Source of the DNA: Schizochytrium sp. TIO01
Taxonomy: Eukaryota; Protista; Bigyra: Labyrinthulomycetes
DNA: 64,000 bases
Direction of reading: 5' to 3'
Assembly: GCA_004764695.1 (NCBI GenBank)
Contig: SMSO01000005.1
Span: 682,001-746,000, forward strand
The translations under genes and the position numbers were made by a program. This document shows, in pieces, positions 43,220-47,401 of this stretch. Within the stretch, counting starts at the first letter, position 1. Each line of letters begins with the position of its first letter. The notes beneath the pieces are model-generated. The model was not told where the DNA came from, searched no databases, and saw only the letters and a list, made by a program, of their open reading frames with translations.

Positions 43220-43946
43220 CTCCGTCTTTACCTTCTATCCTGTCTCTTCTCCTAGTTTATGATAGCTTAAGCACTTGGGTGTCTTCCTCAAGAAAGCCCG
43301 GCGTGAGCTCTTGTGATATCCTGTCGTTCGGTTGCTTAAGAAGGCCAAACCTCCTTTACCTTCAGGAATGGAGAACATGAAAAACCAGCAATTGATATGT
43401 CACTATCATTGTCATTTGTAACTCTTAATAGCTATTGTTAGTGCATATAAACCCTTCATTTCATACTATGGAGTAATAATTCCTTGGACTTGTGTTCATA
43501 CATACCACTAATAGTACCTAGGCAGGATACATACCGACATACTTATATACATAATTTAAATGATTTATAAGGGTGTTGCTTTTGAGAGTGTCGCTTCTAT
43601 ACACTTGAAGAACTGAGAATAGAGCTTTAGTTTTCATAGTCCTGAACCATATACCCTATATTTTGCAAAACACTGTCTCGCAAAACACTGTCAAGTACTT
43701 AGGGTTAGGTGTGTAACACACGATCTACATCGGTTCGTCTGACAGAACTATTTGCTGCAACAACTCCTCTTCGACTCCAGCTTATGAGACTGTTTCCTTT
43801 CCTTTCTCGCTCATCGATAATTTTCTCAGCTGCACGGCTCTCTTCAAATCTACATATGTAAAAGCCTACAAACCCGGTTCAACCTTCTCCTCTTTGCCCA
43901 TGGTCCTGGATCCGATTCCAAGCTCAGTAATCAGGGAACGTAGACA

Positions 43947-44045
43947 CTTAGAGATTAACCTATAAAATTTGCAAAACTTGCATTTCCTATGGTGAAAAAG
44001 TGGGCTACCTCCCAATCGCGGGTTAAAAACTAACCGGCGACTCAA
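43947..44045 (-). ncRNA. Putative omegaRNA scaffold (3' part) of the deleted copy
   Basis: Hairpins UCGCCGGUUAG/UUAACCCGCGA, UGGG/CCCA and UGCAA/UUGCA, homologous to those of the full copy. The 5' boundary is unknown. Confidence 0.55.
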
Positions 44046-44610
44046 AGACAATTCTTAAATGACGCCATTGGATAGGCATCGTAAAAGGATGTCTTTGGCT
44101 GCGTGGATATCACGATCGGCTACGTGTTTGCATTTCTGGGGGTATTTGAAAACCGCGGATGCTCCGAGCTTGTCATGGATCGTAGGTACCACCACCCACA
44201 TTCAGTGCATTGTTTTGAGTTGCAGTCCTCTCTGCAAATAACCAATTTGCACCACTGGTAGGGGAAAAGCTCGGCTTTGTGAATGAGCGAGCTAGAGGTC
44301 ACCAAATTGGTGTTGGGGACCCTCGTTTTGATTCGCGGAGGACACCCTGGGGTAGATAATGGCATAGTCAGTGCTGCGTTGCTGTGTCCGCTGGAGCAAA
44401 CCGCAGTTATAGGTGCCCTCAACGTCATCAGCTGCGAATATACGATTGCCTCGAAAGGGCTTGCTGAGACGCCAAGCTTCTGGTGGAGGTACTTTGCTGG
44501 CTTGTCTTGTAGGTTTGCTTCACTTGTAGTGTTTGGAGCTTGGTGGTTCTTCGGCCATTCCATTTTCTTACCTAACCTCCACTAATTAACAATCACATAA
44601 ACAATGATAA
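43947..44610 (-). mobile_element. Non-autonomous, internally deleted IS607/Fanzor2-family element (diverged relative of the 44967-47113 element)
   Basis: Shares the left end (exact ccattttcttacctaacctccac), TnpA N-terminal remnants (KPAKYLHQKLGVSAS; IIYPRVSSANQ), a Fanzor C-terminal remnant (HKAELFP..WCKLVICRED..SKQCTECG) and the right end (aaaatttgcaaaacttgcatttc) with the full copy. About 1.46 kb is missing at ~44291. Confidence 0.88.
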
Positions 44611-44966
44611 ACTATTTCATTTTTATACAGAATAGTCAATACTATTCGGAGGTCATCAAAGTTCTCACGTTTTCATAAGTACAGTAAAGTACAGTGGAAG
44701 AAACTTCATATTGATAGAAGTCTTTGAGTTTAGCAGTTTGTGCGACGAACATATAAAGCCCAGAATCTGAAAATACTACCCAGGTAGGTACTACTAGTAG
44801 TTAGTATTTATGTTTACCTACCTAACCTACCTACTACCTACCTATACAGCTTGCACTATCTCCTAGGTAGTCCTAGTATTAGTAGTATTCATGTTTTCAT
44901 TTTGAGAGATAGATCATCATAAGGACGAAATGTGAGCGCTACCTAATCCGTTAAGAGCCCAATTCT

Positions 44967-45060
44967 CTTAGATTTTAAACTACAAAATTTGCAAAACTTG
45001 CATTTCATAGAAGGAGCTAAGACTCCATCACGAGCTAGTTAGACTAACCCGCGACTCAAT
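44967..45060 (-). ncRNA. Putative Fanzor omegaRNA scaffold (3' part), overlapping the Fanzor stop codon; guide would continue into the flank below 44967
   Basis: 11-bp hairpin UCGCGGGUUAG/CUAGCUCGUGA with G-U pairs on the minus strand, GGAGU/GCUCC hairpin and UGCAA/UUGCA hairpin. Position at the right end matches the known TnpB/Fanzor layout. Confidence 0.65.
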
Positions 45061-47066
45061 GAAATGATTTTTTAAAATCATGTCCTTGGATAGGTAGCGT
45101 AAAAGGATGCCTCTGGCGGCATGGACATCACGGTCTGCTACATGGTTGCACTTGGGATTAGGGCATTGGAAAACCTTGGATGCGCCGAGTTTATGGTGGA
45201 GGGTACCGCACTCATTGCATGTTTTTGAAGTGTAACTCTCTTGGCAAAGAAAACAAGCTTGCACCACGGGAACATCTCAGCCTTGTGAACGAGAGCCTGG
45301 CGGAACCCAAAATGGCACCAACGACACATCATTCGAACAGACTTCTTGGATATCCGTCGCTCCATCTTCCTACTCATCTTAGAGGTTTCGAATTTAGGCA
45401 AGAGAATAACACGATAGTTTTCACAAAGCCAAAGTGCAAGCTTGCGATGAATCTCAGTGGTCTTGTTCTTGATCTTGAGTTGGGCGCGATAGAATGCGCG
45501 CTTCAAGGGGGTGTTGAAATTGTCTTTATCACTGGATGCAGTTTTCTTATTATTTTCTTGAGCTTTATCAATCCTGCTCTGGATCTTATCAACGCGGCGA
45601 CAGAGATAGAATATGGTTCTAAAATCTTTCCCTGTGCCCCATTCAATGGCGCGGCCATCAGCGTCATACATCGTCTGAAACGAGCGAACACCTGGATCTA
45701 GAGCAATGACACCATGGTACGCCTTGGGTGCCTGGTCCATTGGACGCTTTTTTTCTTCTCGTAAGAAGCAGAAGTAGACATGCCCAAGGCGATTCATTTG
45801 CACACGCATGGCGTTCGAAATCTGGTCGGGGAACTTTTCTTTACGTGTTCGGAATTTTTTTAGAAAGTCGGAGGTCTTTGATTTCTTCAAATTCCAGGTA
45901 CGTGCATTCACTTCGAAAATCTGTGATTCATCACGCTTGGTCCGAAACTTATAAAAAGATTGCTCATGAACTTTCTTTTGTACAGCGAGTTCTTCGTTTT
46001 TGGCTCGTCCCGAGTTAATAGCCTTGAAGAAATCCAGAATCCCGGAATCACGGATAGCCTGTGGGACCTCGAGAACCCATTCAGGAGCACCATTCCTTTC
46101 TTTAGATCGAACGGCTTTCTTTTCTCCATAGAGGGCACCATACGTTTGGGGATTCCCATCTTCATCTACTAAAACCTGCTTCGTCTTGGAATCCTTTTTG
46201 ATGCACGCTTCTTGATGCAATTTGATGGCTTCTTCCTCGCCCTTCGCCACGTCTCGATGAAACGCAACGCCAGTATTGTAGGCTCTTCTGGTGACACCGA
46301 ACCATTTAAGCAATTGTGTACGCTGATCTTTAGTAGGGTATACCCTAACCTTTCTGGCACGGACAAGGTCATATTCTTTCTTGGTGGTCTTGCGCGCCTT
46401 CGTGCGAGTTCGCTTCTTCCTCGCTGCGTCGTCGCCGTCTATTTTGCGCTGCTCGTTTTCCGTGATGCGATGCCACAAAGACAGTGATAATTCCGAGGAG
46501 GTCTTTGGTGAAGGTGTCTGAGTCTCCGGCATGTGCATCTTGGCCGTGTACCACGAGTTTGACATTTTTTCTTTCGAAAAGGTGTTCCAGGAGGTCGACT
46601 GCGATTCGCGCAAGTCGGTCGCGGTGCATAACCACAACTTGGCCGATTCCTCCGCGGTCGCAGGCGTCCAGTAGGGAGCACAGGCCTTGGCGTTTGAAAT
46701 TGACCCCACTACCGATGTCTTTGTAGACGGCGGAAGCATCTGGGTAGGCGCGCTGGAGATCGCCAATCTGGCGTTCGAGGTCCTCCTTTTGCTTGGCCGA
46801 GGACACTCTGGCGTAGATAACGGTACATCCAGAGTTGCGTTGCTCGCGGCCGGCGGAACCGCGATCAAAGATGCGCTCAACATCGTCGCTGGCGTAGATG
46901 CGCTTTCCTCCGGGGAAGCGCGCGCAGCGCACGCGTCCGCCATCGGCCCAGCCCCGAAGGGCGCTTGCTGAGACCCCAAACTTCCGGTGAAAGAACTTTG
47001 CTGGTTTGTATTCGAGGTTTGCTCCACTTGCAGTGTTTGGAGCTTGACGGTTCCTCGGCTCCCCAT
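45028..47066 (-). CDS. tnpB: Fanzor2 / IS607 TnpB-type RNA-guided endonuclease, frameshifted at ~45250 as assembled (642-aa ORF 45138-47066 plus C-terminal frame ending 45028)
   Basis: RARKVRVYPTKDQRTQLLKWFGVTRRAYN (OrfB HTH) and RuvC-I VIALDPGVRSF. RuvC-II region NYRVILLPKFE lacks the canonical Glu. The shifted frame supplies LCQESYTSKTCNECG...FQCPNPKC (alternative Glu and Zn finger) and RuvC-III ADRDVHAARGIL. The N-terminal KLWLC.TD...SNSWY segment resembles Fanzor2. Confidence 0.92.
46369..47066 (-). CDS. tnpA: IS607 TnpA serine recombinase (MerR-like HTH + catalytic domain), nested in an alternative frame of the Fanzor ORF; ATG 47066 is one base out of frame as assembled
   Basis: The frame is open upstream of the tracked GTG at 46932: YKPAKFFHRKFGVSASALRGWADGGRVRCARFPGGKRIY (HTH), then VIYARVSSAKQKEDLERQ, KDIGSGVNFKRQGL, VVVMHRDRLAR, DLLGIITVFVASHHGKR. 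Confidence 0.92.
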
Positions 47067-47401
47067 TTTCTTACCTAACCTCCACTTCTTATCAATAACC
47101 TAAATAAACATAATATATGCAATCATATCGAAATATAAGTTATCGAACTTTTAACGGTTTTGTTATGCTGATTACATATTAATATTAAATACAAATGACA
47201 GAATGCATGGGCTTTTCTAGCATGCGAACAGCAAGACCCAGAAATAACATAACATTTACTACAGTGTTTGAAGAAAGGCCCGGTAATCAATTGATCTTCA
47301 CTCGTCGGAGGGATTTCAGACACGCAGCGGGTTGCCGCCGCCCTGTTGGCACGGGGTTGCGCATGCCTACAGCAAGCGTTTACAAATAAAGCCACTTTAC
47401 C

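Follow-up and report, generated by a model that had tools for sequence, protein, structure and literature searches.

The window, i.e. the whole stretch of 64,000 nucleotides analysed from the genome of Schizochytrium sp. TIO01, contains one copy of an IS607-type Fanzor2 transposon, assigned here to family A, which adjoins an older element of a second family, B. The features are listed below: all are located on the minus strand.

44965–47170, minus strand: family A IS607-type Fanzor2 transposon copy, about 2.2 kb, with CAGC... at the left and ...CTAAGAG at the right end.
47067–47170, minus strand: left-end non-coding region, identified by copy alignment, with a 12-nt deletion private to the window copy.
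46369–47066, minus strand: tnpA, coding for an IS607-family serine recombinase (Pfam Resolvase), with its stop codon at 46369–46371.
45028–46943, minus strand: Fanzor2-type nuclease gene, found as open reading frames in two different frames; the first ATG of the long frame is at 46941–46943.
46377–46424, minus strand: basic NLS-like stretch ARKKRTRTKARKTTKK, recognized in the sequence directly upstream of the conserved nuclease core.
45696–45698, minus strand: codon for the RuvC-I catalytic Asp (DPG motif), within ALDPG at 45690–45704.
45238–45240, minus strand: codon for the relocated (alternative) RuvC-II Glu, in QESYTS; invariant in the homologues and corresponding to the Glu of NEYLTT in 9b0l.
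45127–45219, minus strand: C4 zinc finger and RuvC-III Asp (CNEC at 45208–45219, CPNPKC at 45148–45165, Asp of DRD at 45127–45129; Pfam PF07282).
44965–45059, minus strand: omegaRNA-like module with three conserved hairpins (covariance model R1, 104.6 bits), terminating at the transposon boundary.
44945–44964, minus strand: putative guide template of a read-through omegaRNA, in the flank directly 3' of the right end, proposed by analogy to IS607 TnpB/Fanzor (PMC10711439).
43945–44684, minus strand: older, internally deleted, non-autonomous family B element, with CTGT... / ...CTAAGTG ends, adjoining the window element.

In the window copy, the open reading frame of the serine recombinase spans 46369–46932 on the minus strand and matches Pfam Resolvase at 1.6e-20. 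It contains the catalytic motif YARVSS (46798–46815), aligned with the corresponding motif of ISC1926 TnpA in PDB 6dgc, and a remnant of the HTH, FPGGKRIY (46894–46917); the catalytic Ser reported in a preliminary description of this DNA is present. TnpA is 232 aa long in intact sister copies. The protein from one of them (L004:1530-2228) matches Resolvase at 5e-20, shows weak MerR/HTH_17 matches at residues 28–66, and scores 144.9 bits against NCBIfam NF033518 (IS607 transposase; cut-off 110 bits), covering model positions 4–187 of 187. The best PDB matches of TnpA are catalytic domains from the same family. Judging from the sequence, the domain order is the inverted one of the IS607 family: the MerR-like HTH is N-terminal, and the catalytic domain of the serine recombinase comes after it.

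The first 190 or so codons of the nuclease gene lie within tnpA, in the +1 frame of the latter. Its diagnostic motifs, as first read (ALDPG, ILLP, QESYTS, the C4 zinc finger, DRD and the basic NLS-like stretch), are all found at their positions. Across 14 aligned homologues, Asp and Gly of DPG are invariant, while Pro is present in 13. The canonical Glu site is occupied by ILLPKFE (45387–45407), aligned with ICIGKLNV of 9b0l, and six residues separate the relocated Glu from the first zinc-finger Cys, in QESYTSKTC. The combination of DPG and alternative Glu has been defined as a fingerprint (PMC10711439), and the N-terminal NLSs of Fanzors are functional (PMC10530073).

Profile searches, proposed as a check in the preliminary description, give matches to TnpB-type models for the nuclease, as they do to Resolvase for TnpA. 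Pfam matches are HTH_OrfB_IS605 (PF12323), PF01385 (weak) and Cas12f1-like_TNB (PF07282). The NCBIfam guided_TnpB model is covered from position 2 to 388 of 389, with 94.7 bits, slightly below the cut-off of 100; with the IS607_TnpB model, whose cut-off is 350, the score is only 62 bits. The best PDB match by sequence is the mimivirus Fanzor2, 9b0l (2e-18), with no Fanzor1 chain at E<=1. The same protein is the best Foldseek match (2e-17) of the AlphaFold model, whose quality is moderate (mean pLDDT 63): TnpB (8h1j) comes next, and SpuFz1, a Fanzor1, is matched only at about 1e-4. A protein atlas search indicates the TnpB family, nothing further. By sequence and fold scores, the nuclease is classified as a Fanzor2-type protein of TnpB-like fold, nearer to Fanzor2 and IS607 TnpB than to Fanzor1. 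Its architecture is that of TnpB: HTH/WED-REC in the N-terminal part, then a split RuvC, whose parts II and III enclose the zinc finger.

The extent of the element is defined by 23 aligned copies, whose similarity ends abruptly at the points corresponding to 44965 and 47170, the flanks being unrelated. Of the limits originally proposed, 44967 and 47113, the former is in agreement with this result (at most 2 nt apart), while the latter falls short of the left end, where about 100 nt of non-coding DNA, conserved among the copies, also belong to the element. CAG is found at the left boundary in 16 of 20 copies. Neither terminal inverted repeats nor target duplications are present in the flanks of about 20 copies, and the CAGT... 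and ...CTAAGAG termini are not inverted repeats of each other. Both junctions feature the same dinucleotide: AG/AG in family A (C-AG-T... / ...AAG-AG), TG/TG in family B (C-TG-T... / ...AAG-TG). The ends of both families, as aligned, obey the matching-dinucleotide rule of IS607 elements. A single comparison, the reconstruction of the empty site of one copy (L007), fits an insertion at a pre-existing CAG, and also fits other crossover positions. No clear TnpA-binding repeat emerges from the 6-mers common to left and right ends.

The right end had been described as coding for a structured RNA, and conserved hairpins, with some compensatory changes, are indeed found. When 27 distinct copies are compared over 19 base pairs, 92.4% of the cells are paired, versus 24–55% when partners are slid. 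Eight cells, from four pairs, are altered on both sides, a number reached in 3 of 500 shuffles; the z-score of the minimum free energy is -2.6. The structure is common to families A and B, despite an overall identity of only about 67%: at the right end of the family B element, R1 matches positions 43945–44045 with 93.1 bits. RNAalifold, run on plain MAFFT alignments, recovers only part of the structure, with hairpin 2 misplaced by indels; the covariance-model alignment was used instead. An Rfam search of the right end retrieves no matching family. The right end is a conserved, structured, omegaRNA-like non-coding region, from which a putative RNA would be produced.

The system had been regarded as complete, a definition which does not apply to the window copy, since both genes carry private frameshifts. 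In tnpA, a 1-nt deletion at 47059/47060 (codon 3, GG to G), absent from every sister in which the region is present, places the ATG (47064–47066) out of frame with the recombinase; no alternative ATG is available upstream of either the HTH or the catalytic Ser. In the nuclease, a 2-nt insertion within 45243–45258 (TT to TTTT at about 45250), absent from 22 of 22 sisters, comes after the codon for the RuvC-I Asp and before that for the relocated Glu, so that the Asp falls in one frame (ORF 45138–47066) and the Glu, zinc finger and RuvC-III in another (45028–45267). Each of the two indels shortens or lengthens a short homopolymer run, and the closest sister, L002, is intact at 98.9% identity, as might be expected if they were assembly or polishing errors in an intact, autonomous copy. 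This reading is unlikely: the same runs are read correctly in other copies of the same assembly, and the window copy, in addition to its private 12-nt left-end deletion, differs from L002 by 24 substitutions and 5 indel events, an ordinary decay pattern. Most likely, the window copy is a non-autonomous, decaying element. With its two ends and its RNA module preserved, it could yet be mobilized or protected in trans.

Other members of the family are better preserved. The 64-Mb genome, whose nearest relative with a name is a thraustochytrid, contains at least 23 near-full copies, 81–99.8% identical, spread over 10 large contigs with unrelated flanks; in 9 of them both genes are open. Two copies, L006 and L007, differ at 5 of 2203 nt, and near-identical copies at unrelated loci support, at the family level, the recent mobility first suggested for the single element. 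A subfamily, defined by a 294-bp insertion which disrupts tnpA, is found at 5 loci, and one copy interrupts the left end of an element older than itself. Nuclease homologues derived from MMETSP transcripts are 90% identical (the best being P0001). Right-end RNA modules number at least 140, mostly within old, internally deleted derivatives. The family B neighbour joins a left end and the 5' part of tnpA to the 3' part of the nuclease and a right-end RNA module. The nuclease might alternatively be seen as a domesticated host gene, no longer mobile. This is extremely improbable, given the high copy number, the near-identical copies at unrelated loci, the conservation of whole-element boundaries and the decay of copies by frameshifts. 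Very probably, as judged from the copies compared, a multi-copy IS607-type Fanzor2 family has recently been active in this genome, its intact members featuring TnpA, Fanzor2 and a structured right end, with the window copy as one defective member. The proposal of a candidate new programmable nuclease may apply to the intact sister copies only.

Giant viruses commonly carry Fanzor2/IS607 elements (PMC3627910, PMC10530073), and the top structural match of the nuclease is a mimivirus protein: the element might accordingly belong to a segment of giant-virus or mirusvirus DNA that has integrated, or lie on a chimeric or contaminant contig. However, the flanking genes are cellular, as anticipated in the preliminary description, which placed the element among ordinary nuclear genes: they code for a guanylate kinase (closest named match from Hondaea fermentalgiana, 70% identity), a KH/Smr protein and a RibD_C protein. 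The spread of the copies over many contigs, each with its own flanks, also argues against a viral or foreign origin, and the 140 or more decayed right ends indicate a long residence. Such an origin is very improbable, and the element is regarded here as a resident of the protist chromosome.

A mechanism may be proposed for this family by analogy with its relatives. TnpA would excise and insert the element by recombination of the matching AG at both ends and at the target, which would leave neither inverted repeats nor a target duplication. Transcription through the right end would generate an omegaRNA with a 3' part that corresponds to the adjacent flank. In complex with this omegaRNA, Fanzor2 would cleave the donor site left empty, and repair of the cut from a filled copy would retain the element.

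The arrangement of the two genes deserves separate consideration. In this clade the nuclease frame is open, in +1, across all of tnpA. Chances appear evenly balanced that the genes overlap fully instead of standing in tandem, and that the nuclease gains in this way an N-terminal extension of about 190 residues, disordered, overprinted on tnpA and ending with the NLS-like stretch, with one capped mRNA giving both proteins by leaky scanning. The divergent copies in the genome, L022–L030, are too decayed for a test of frame conservation, and metagenome loci were used; a scan of viral contigs gives one weak locus only. In L004 and in the metagenome loci L033, L037 and L038 (33–44% protein identity), no stop is found in the +1 frame over 181–228 overlapping codons; synonymous resampling expects 1.7–4.5, the probability of zero stops being 0.15, 0.028, 0.018 and 0.004. 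The extension is kept in homologues of 618–642 aa from other sources. Third-position variation in tnpA is half as frequent inside the overlap (12/191) as elsewhere (62/469; P=0.01), and in both L004 and L037 the first ATG following that of tnpA is the nuclease ATG. Against overprinting, amino-acid conservation in the +1 frame (24.5%) shows a small excess over the +2 frame (20.8%), disorder is predicted for the extension, and in other Fanzor2 lineages the genes are short and do not overlap. L031, a metagenome Fanzor2 locus which lacks tnpA and probably has an intron, was considered as a keeper of the N-terminal motif and discarded: no tblastn similarity is found there. A search of the protein collection for a close TnpA partner of the MMETSP nuclease transcript finds none, the best match being 61% identical. 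If the proposed layout is true, the overlap would show how a two-gene element from bacteria became suited to translation in a eukaryote, with both genes expressed.

The association of TnpA with Fanzor2 had been presented as rare and near-ancestral. It is neither, because Fanzor2 has been known from the outset, in 2013, in IS607-type elements with TnpA, and the pairing is usual for this group (PMC3627910; PMC10711439; PMC10530073). The closest parallel in structure is the IS607 element of Acanthamoeba polyphaga mimivirus (L79 / ApmFz2, 9b0l), which shares the TnpA and Fanzor2 pair. Common to both nucleases are DPG, the alternative Glu position, the zinc finger and a basic NLS region near the N-terminus; a non-coding RNA is conserved at the right end of both elements (PMC10530073). 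Yet, core identity to 9b0l is only about 20%; the mimivirus element is present in three copies in a virus, while dozens to hundreds of copies are found here in a protist chromosome, where the putative nuclease has a frame open over the whole of tnpA, unlike that of the mimivirus element. The elements described by Bao and Jurka in 2013 (ACa-1/2 from Acanthamoeba castellanii; chlorovirus PBCV-1 A625R-like) also combine a TnpA_IS607-like recombinase with Fanzor2 and are without inverted repeats or target duplications (PMC3627910). They differ in host, a labyrinthulomycete in the present case; a homologue annotated as "transposase A625R" (P0014) is 46% identical, and identity to any homologue outside the nuclease's own species is at most 49%. 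Bacterial IS607 TnpA/TnpB systems (ISXfa1; cyanobacterial pro-Fanzors) share the matching-dinucleotide recombination and the guide RNA derived from the right end, and pro-Fanzors also the DPG and alternative-Glu fingerprint (PMC10711439). They are prokaryotic, with genes either separate or slightly overlapping, and without NLS. A search of the literature available for this analysis retrieved no paper tying Fanzor to labyrinthulomycetes. The IS607-Fanzor2 pairing is already known, and what is possibly new is the overlapping layout in this clade.

To our knowledge, the roles of Fanzors in their native eukaryotic hosts are largely unknown, most of the work having been carried out in heterologous cells or on viral proteins. 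The useful find is the family with its intact sisters, the window copy being an ordinary decaying member. The genome, from a marine protist of a culturable type, features a young family in which the genes for TnpA and Fanzor2 are found intact, defective copies which may be mobilized in trans, and many old RNA modules. It may offer a natural eukaryotic system in which to study RNA-guided homing, the choice of TAM and the dynamics between transposon and host.

All motifs listed in the preliminary description lie at the coordinates given there, and a Pfam profile search matched Resolvase, HTH_OrfB_IS605 and Cas12f1-like TNB. The feature is real, but had been over-read.

Features of the window copy (window coordinates; the last six are located as sequence motifs)
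46369-46932, minus strand: serine recombinase ORF (Pfam Resolvase, 1.6e-20)
45138-47066, minus strand: long nuclease ORF, 642 codons, HTH_OrfB_IS605 domain in its C-terminal two thirds
45028-45267, minus strand: short ORF, 79 codons, Cas12f1-like TNB zinc-ribbon domain
45696-45698, minus strand: Asp codon of ALDPG
45238-45240, minus strand: Glu codon of QESYTS
45148-45219, minus strand: C4 zinc finger
45127-45129, minus strand: Asp codon of DRD
46798-46815, minus strand: catalytic YARVSS
46377-46424, minus strand: basic stretch

The naming as IS607 TnpA plus Fanzor2 is correct, by NCBIfam, PDB and fold matches. Intact TnpA scores 144.9 bits on the NCBIfam IS607 transposase equivalog model (cut-off 110), with the whole model covered; among solved structures it comes closest to the IS607-family TnpA catalytic domains of ISC1926, ISC1904 and IS1535, and a weak MerR-type HTH precedes the catalytic domain. 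By sequence, the best solved relative of the nuclease is the mimivirus TnpB-like L79, a Fanzor2 (PDB 9b0l, 2e-18). Its AlphaFold model has a mean pLDDT of 63, with the core mostly at 70-90; a fold search with this predicted structure ranks 9b0l best (2e-17), followed by TnpB and Cas12f, with Fanzor1 at about 1e-4. The Fanzor fingerprints of Yoon et al. (PMC10711439) are DPG in RuvC-I and an alternative Glu six residues ahead of the zinc finger: both are present, and conserved in 14 aligned homologues, the Glu being invariant. The canonical Glu position is occupied, in the window copy, by ILLPKFE.

The system had been described as complete: the window copy is broken in both genes. The nuclease is divided between two reading frames by a 2-nt insertion within 45243-45258, private to this copy and absent from 22 of 22 sister copies in the alignment. 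The recombinase frame lacks a usable ATG, and tnpA codon 3 carries a 1-nt deletion: the window reads ATGGGGAGCC, while all sisters with the region read ATGGGGAGGCC. With these private frameshifts, a private 12-nt deletion in the left end, and 24 substitutions plus 5 indel events relative to L002, its nearest sister, the window copy is read as a decaying one. In both this copy and L002 the T/A run following LSKDMI also contains additional bases (window 45028-45093, minus strand); the usual TAA stop is thereby lost, and the nuclease frame, extended by 17 codons in the window copy and 18 in L002, runs into the right-end RNA region.

In the own genome (64 Mb, 37 contigs) a DNA search detected 23 near-full copies with identities of 81-99%, together with more distant families. 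In nine of them (L002-L009, L013) both frames are open: tnpA encodes 232 aa, starting at an ATG two codons before the one that has lost a nucleotide in the window copy, and the nuclease frame is open over 601-638 codons. The subfamily formed by L004 and L006-L010 is 98-99.8% identical; L006 and L007 differ at 5 of 2203 nt. The nuclease has two close matches among proteins derived from MMETSP transcripts, one of 601 aa and one of 617 aa (both 93-94% identical in alignment; the 601-aa one, P0001, 90% in the search); their transcript origin means that the family is transcribed in the source organism or a close relative. A 294-bp insertion disrupting tnpA is common to five loci.

Copies with the 294-bp insertion
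L015, L017, L019, L021, L024, after element position ~115: HTH-coding part of tnpA

Because these tnpA-disrupted copies occupy different places, the spread of their subfamily implies mobilisation in trans. The insertion holds five CTAAC repeats (telomere-like CCTAA units).

The intact copies keep the nuclease frame, which is +1 relative to tnpA, free of stops from upstream of the tnpA ATG to the end of that gene; the first ATG of the nuclease frame is the next one after that of tnpA.

Overlapping genes in the intact copy L004 (+1 frame)
L004:1530-2228: tnpA
L004:1654-3510: nuclease

Three metagenome loci (L033, L037, L038; 33-44% protein identity) have the same layout. Across the four elements no +1-frame stop occurs in 181-228 overlapping codons, where synonymous resampling predicts 1.7-4.5 (P(0) = 0.15, 0.028, 0.018, 0.004). 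The N-terminal extension is kept in homologues of 618-642 aa from other sources. Among the nine intact copies, variation at tnpA third positions within the overlap is half as frequent as at third positions outside it (P=0.01), and the entire overlap shows half the variability of the nuclease-only part (P=0.001). Against overprinting, the +1 frame hardly exceeds the +2 frame in amino-acid identity (24.5% vs 20.8%). The extension is predicted to be disordered. Nucleases of other Fanzor2 lineages have about 400 aa and, to judge from contig and protein sizes, these lineages appear to have a separate tnpA; no mention of the overlap was found in key Fanzor papers. We give about an even chance to the reading that the N-terminal extension is overprinted and that leaky scanning on a single mRNA yields both proteins. 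A GC-rich Fanzor2 relative at 44% identity, with no tnpA beside it, lies at L031:1481-3805 (metagenome contig Ga0209390_10020585); its frame is interrupted for about 150 nt, between the RAYP... segment and the GVTRRAYN motif, by what looks like a spliceosomal intron.

Similarity among copies stops sharply after ...CTAAGAG, at window 44965, in agreement with the right end first proposed; it starts at CAG(T/C), at window 47170, placing the left end about 55 nt farther out than had been described, for an element of about 2.2 kb. Comparison of copies and flanks revealed neither terminal inverted repeats nor a target-site duplication. In family A, to which the window copy belongs, the left junction reads C-AG-T and the right one AAG-AG; in the related family B they read C-TG-T and AAG-TG. 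A matching dinucleotide at the two junctions is the signature of transposition by IS607 serine recombinases (PMC10711439, PMC6188088), and the junctions of both families display it; in one divergent copy the dinucleotide may be CG at each end. Almost all copies have a C 5' of the dinucleotide, with an A before it in 9 of 16, and an A or T directly follows the right end in 20 of 21. If the recombinase model holds, these adjacent bases come from the target, which makes them candidates for a preference in target or TAM. Locus L007 has a family A copy within the left end of an older family B element; the flanks of this copy, once joined, align to the left end of the family B element in the window, where the matching place reads CTG (CAG on the other strand). 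The comparison fits insertion at a pre-existing CAG without proving it.

The last ~95 nt ahead of the right boundary are predicted to fold into three hairpins. Among 27 distinct copies of both families, standard pairs fill 92.4% of pair cells, vs 24-55% with slid partners, counts that lean towards structure, the alignment being model-guided and fitted to the model. Changes on both sides occur at four pairs (8 cells), a result matched by only 3 of 500 shuffles. An Rfam search of the right end gave no family match. The module is a putative omegaRNA-like RNA.

A covariance model of the right end has at least 140 matches in the genome, a lower bound, as 150 of 21,021 first-look candidates were scored. 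The extra matches sampled are for the most part short elements, measuring 456-794 nt between the ATG motif and the right-end motif (for example L067, L070, L075, L078 and L079), with one common internal deletion junction and a mutual identity of only 59-71%: they are interpreted as a MITE-like, non-autonomous derivative of the Fanzor2 transposon that multiplied in an ancient burst. One element of this kind lies in the window, beside the full copy.

Second element of the window
43945-44684, minus strand: internally deleted, non-autonomous family B element, keeping the left end, the tnpA 5' part, the nuclease 3' part and the right-end RNA module

This older element, with ends CTGT... and ...CTAAGTG, is separated from the full copy by about 280 bp; the spacer (44685-44964) contains a short run of TAGG/GTAGG-like repeats (44800-44890, minus strand). 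Elements of the superfamily often adjoin or nest: besides the A and B pair of the window, a short copy lies about 200 bp from a full one at L005:662-1297, and the nested arrangement of L007 is found at L007:3710-5000. Such clustering may reflect target preference.

The cellular setting claimed for the element is borne out by its neighbours, which encode a guanylate kinase, a KH/Smr protein and a RibD_C protein, all cellular; the closest named guanylate kinase is that of the thraustochytrid Hondaea fermentalgiana (70% identity). Retention of TnpA had been presented as rare. Fanzor2 was defined in 2013 as the Fanzors of IS607-type elements with TnpA, from protists and giant viruses (PMC3627910); the pairing is thus the norm for the type, and the rarity argument does not apply. 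RNA-guided activity, NLSs, structures and the IS607 origin of Fanzor2 were described later (PMC10530073, PMC10711439, PDB 9b0l). A literature search turned up no paper that connects Fanzor with labyrinthulomycetes; both the host lineage and this family appear new for Fanzor2 elements of IS607 type. The value of the finding lies in a young family with intact copies, abundant derivative elements and a possible overlapping-gene layout.
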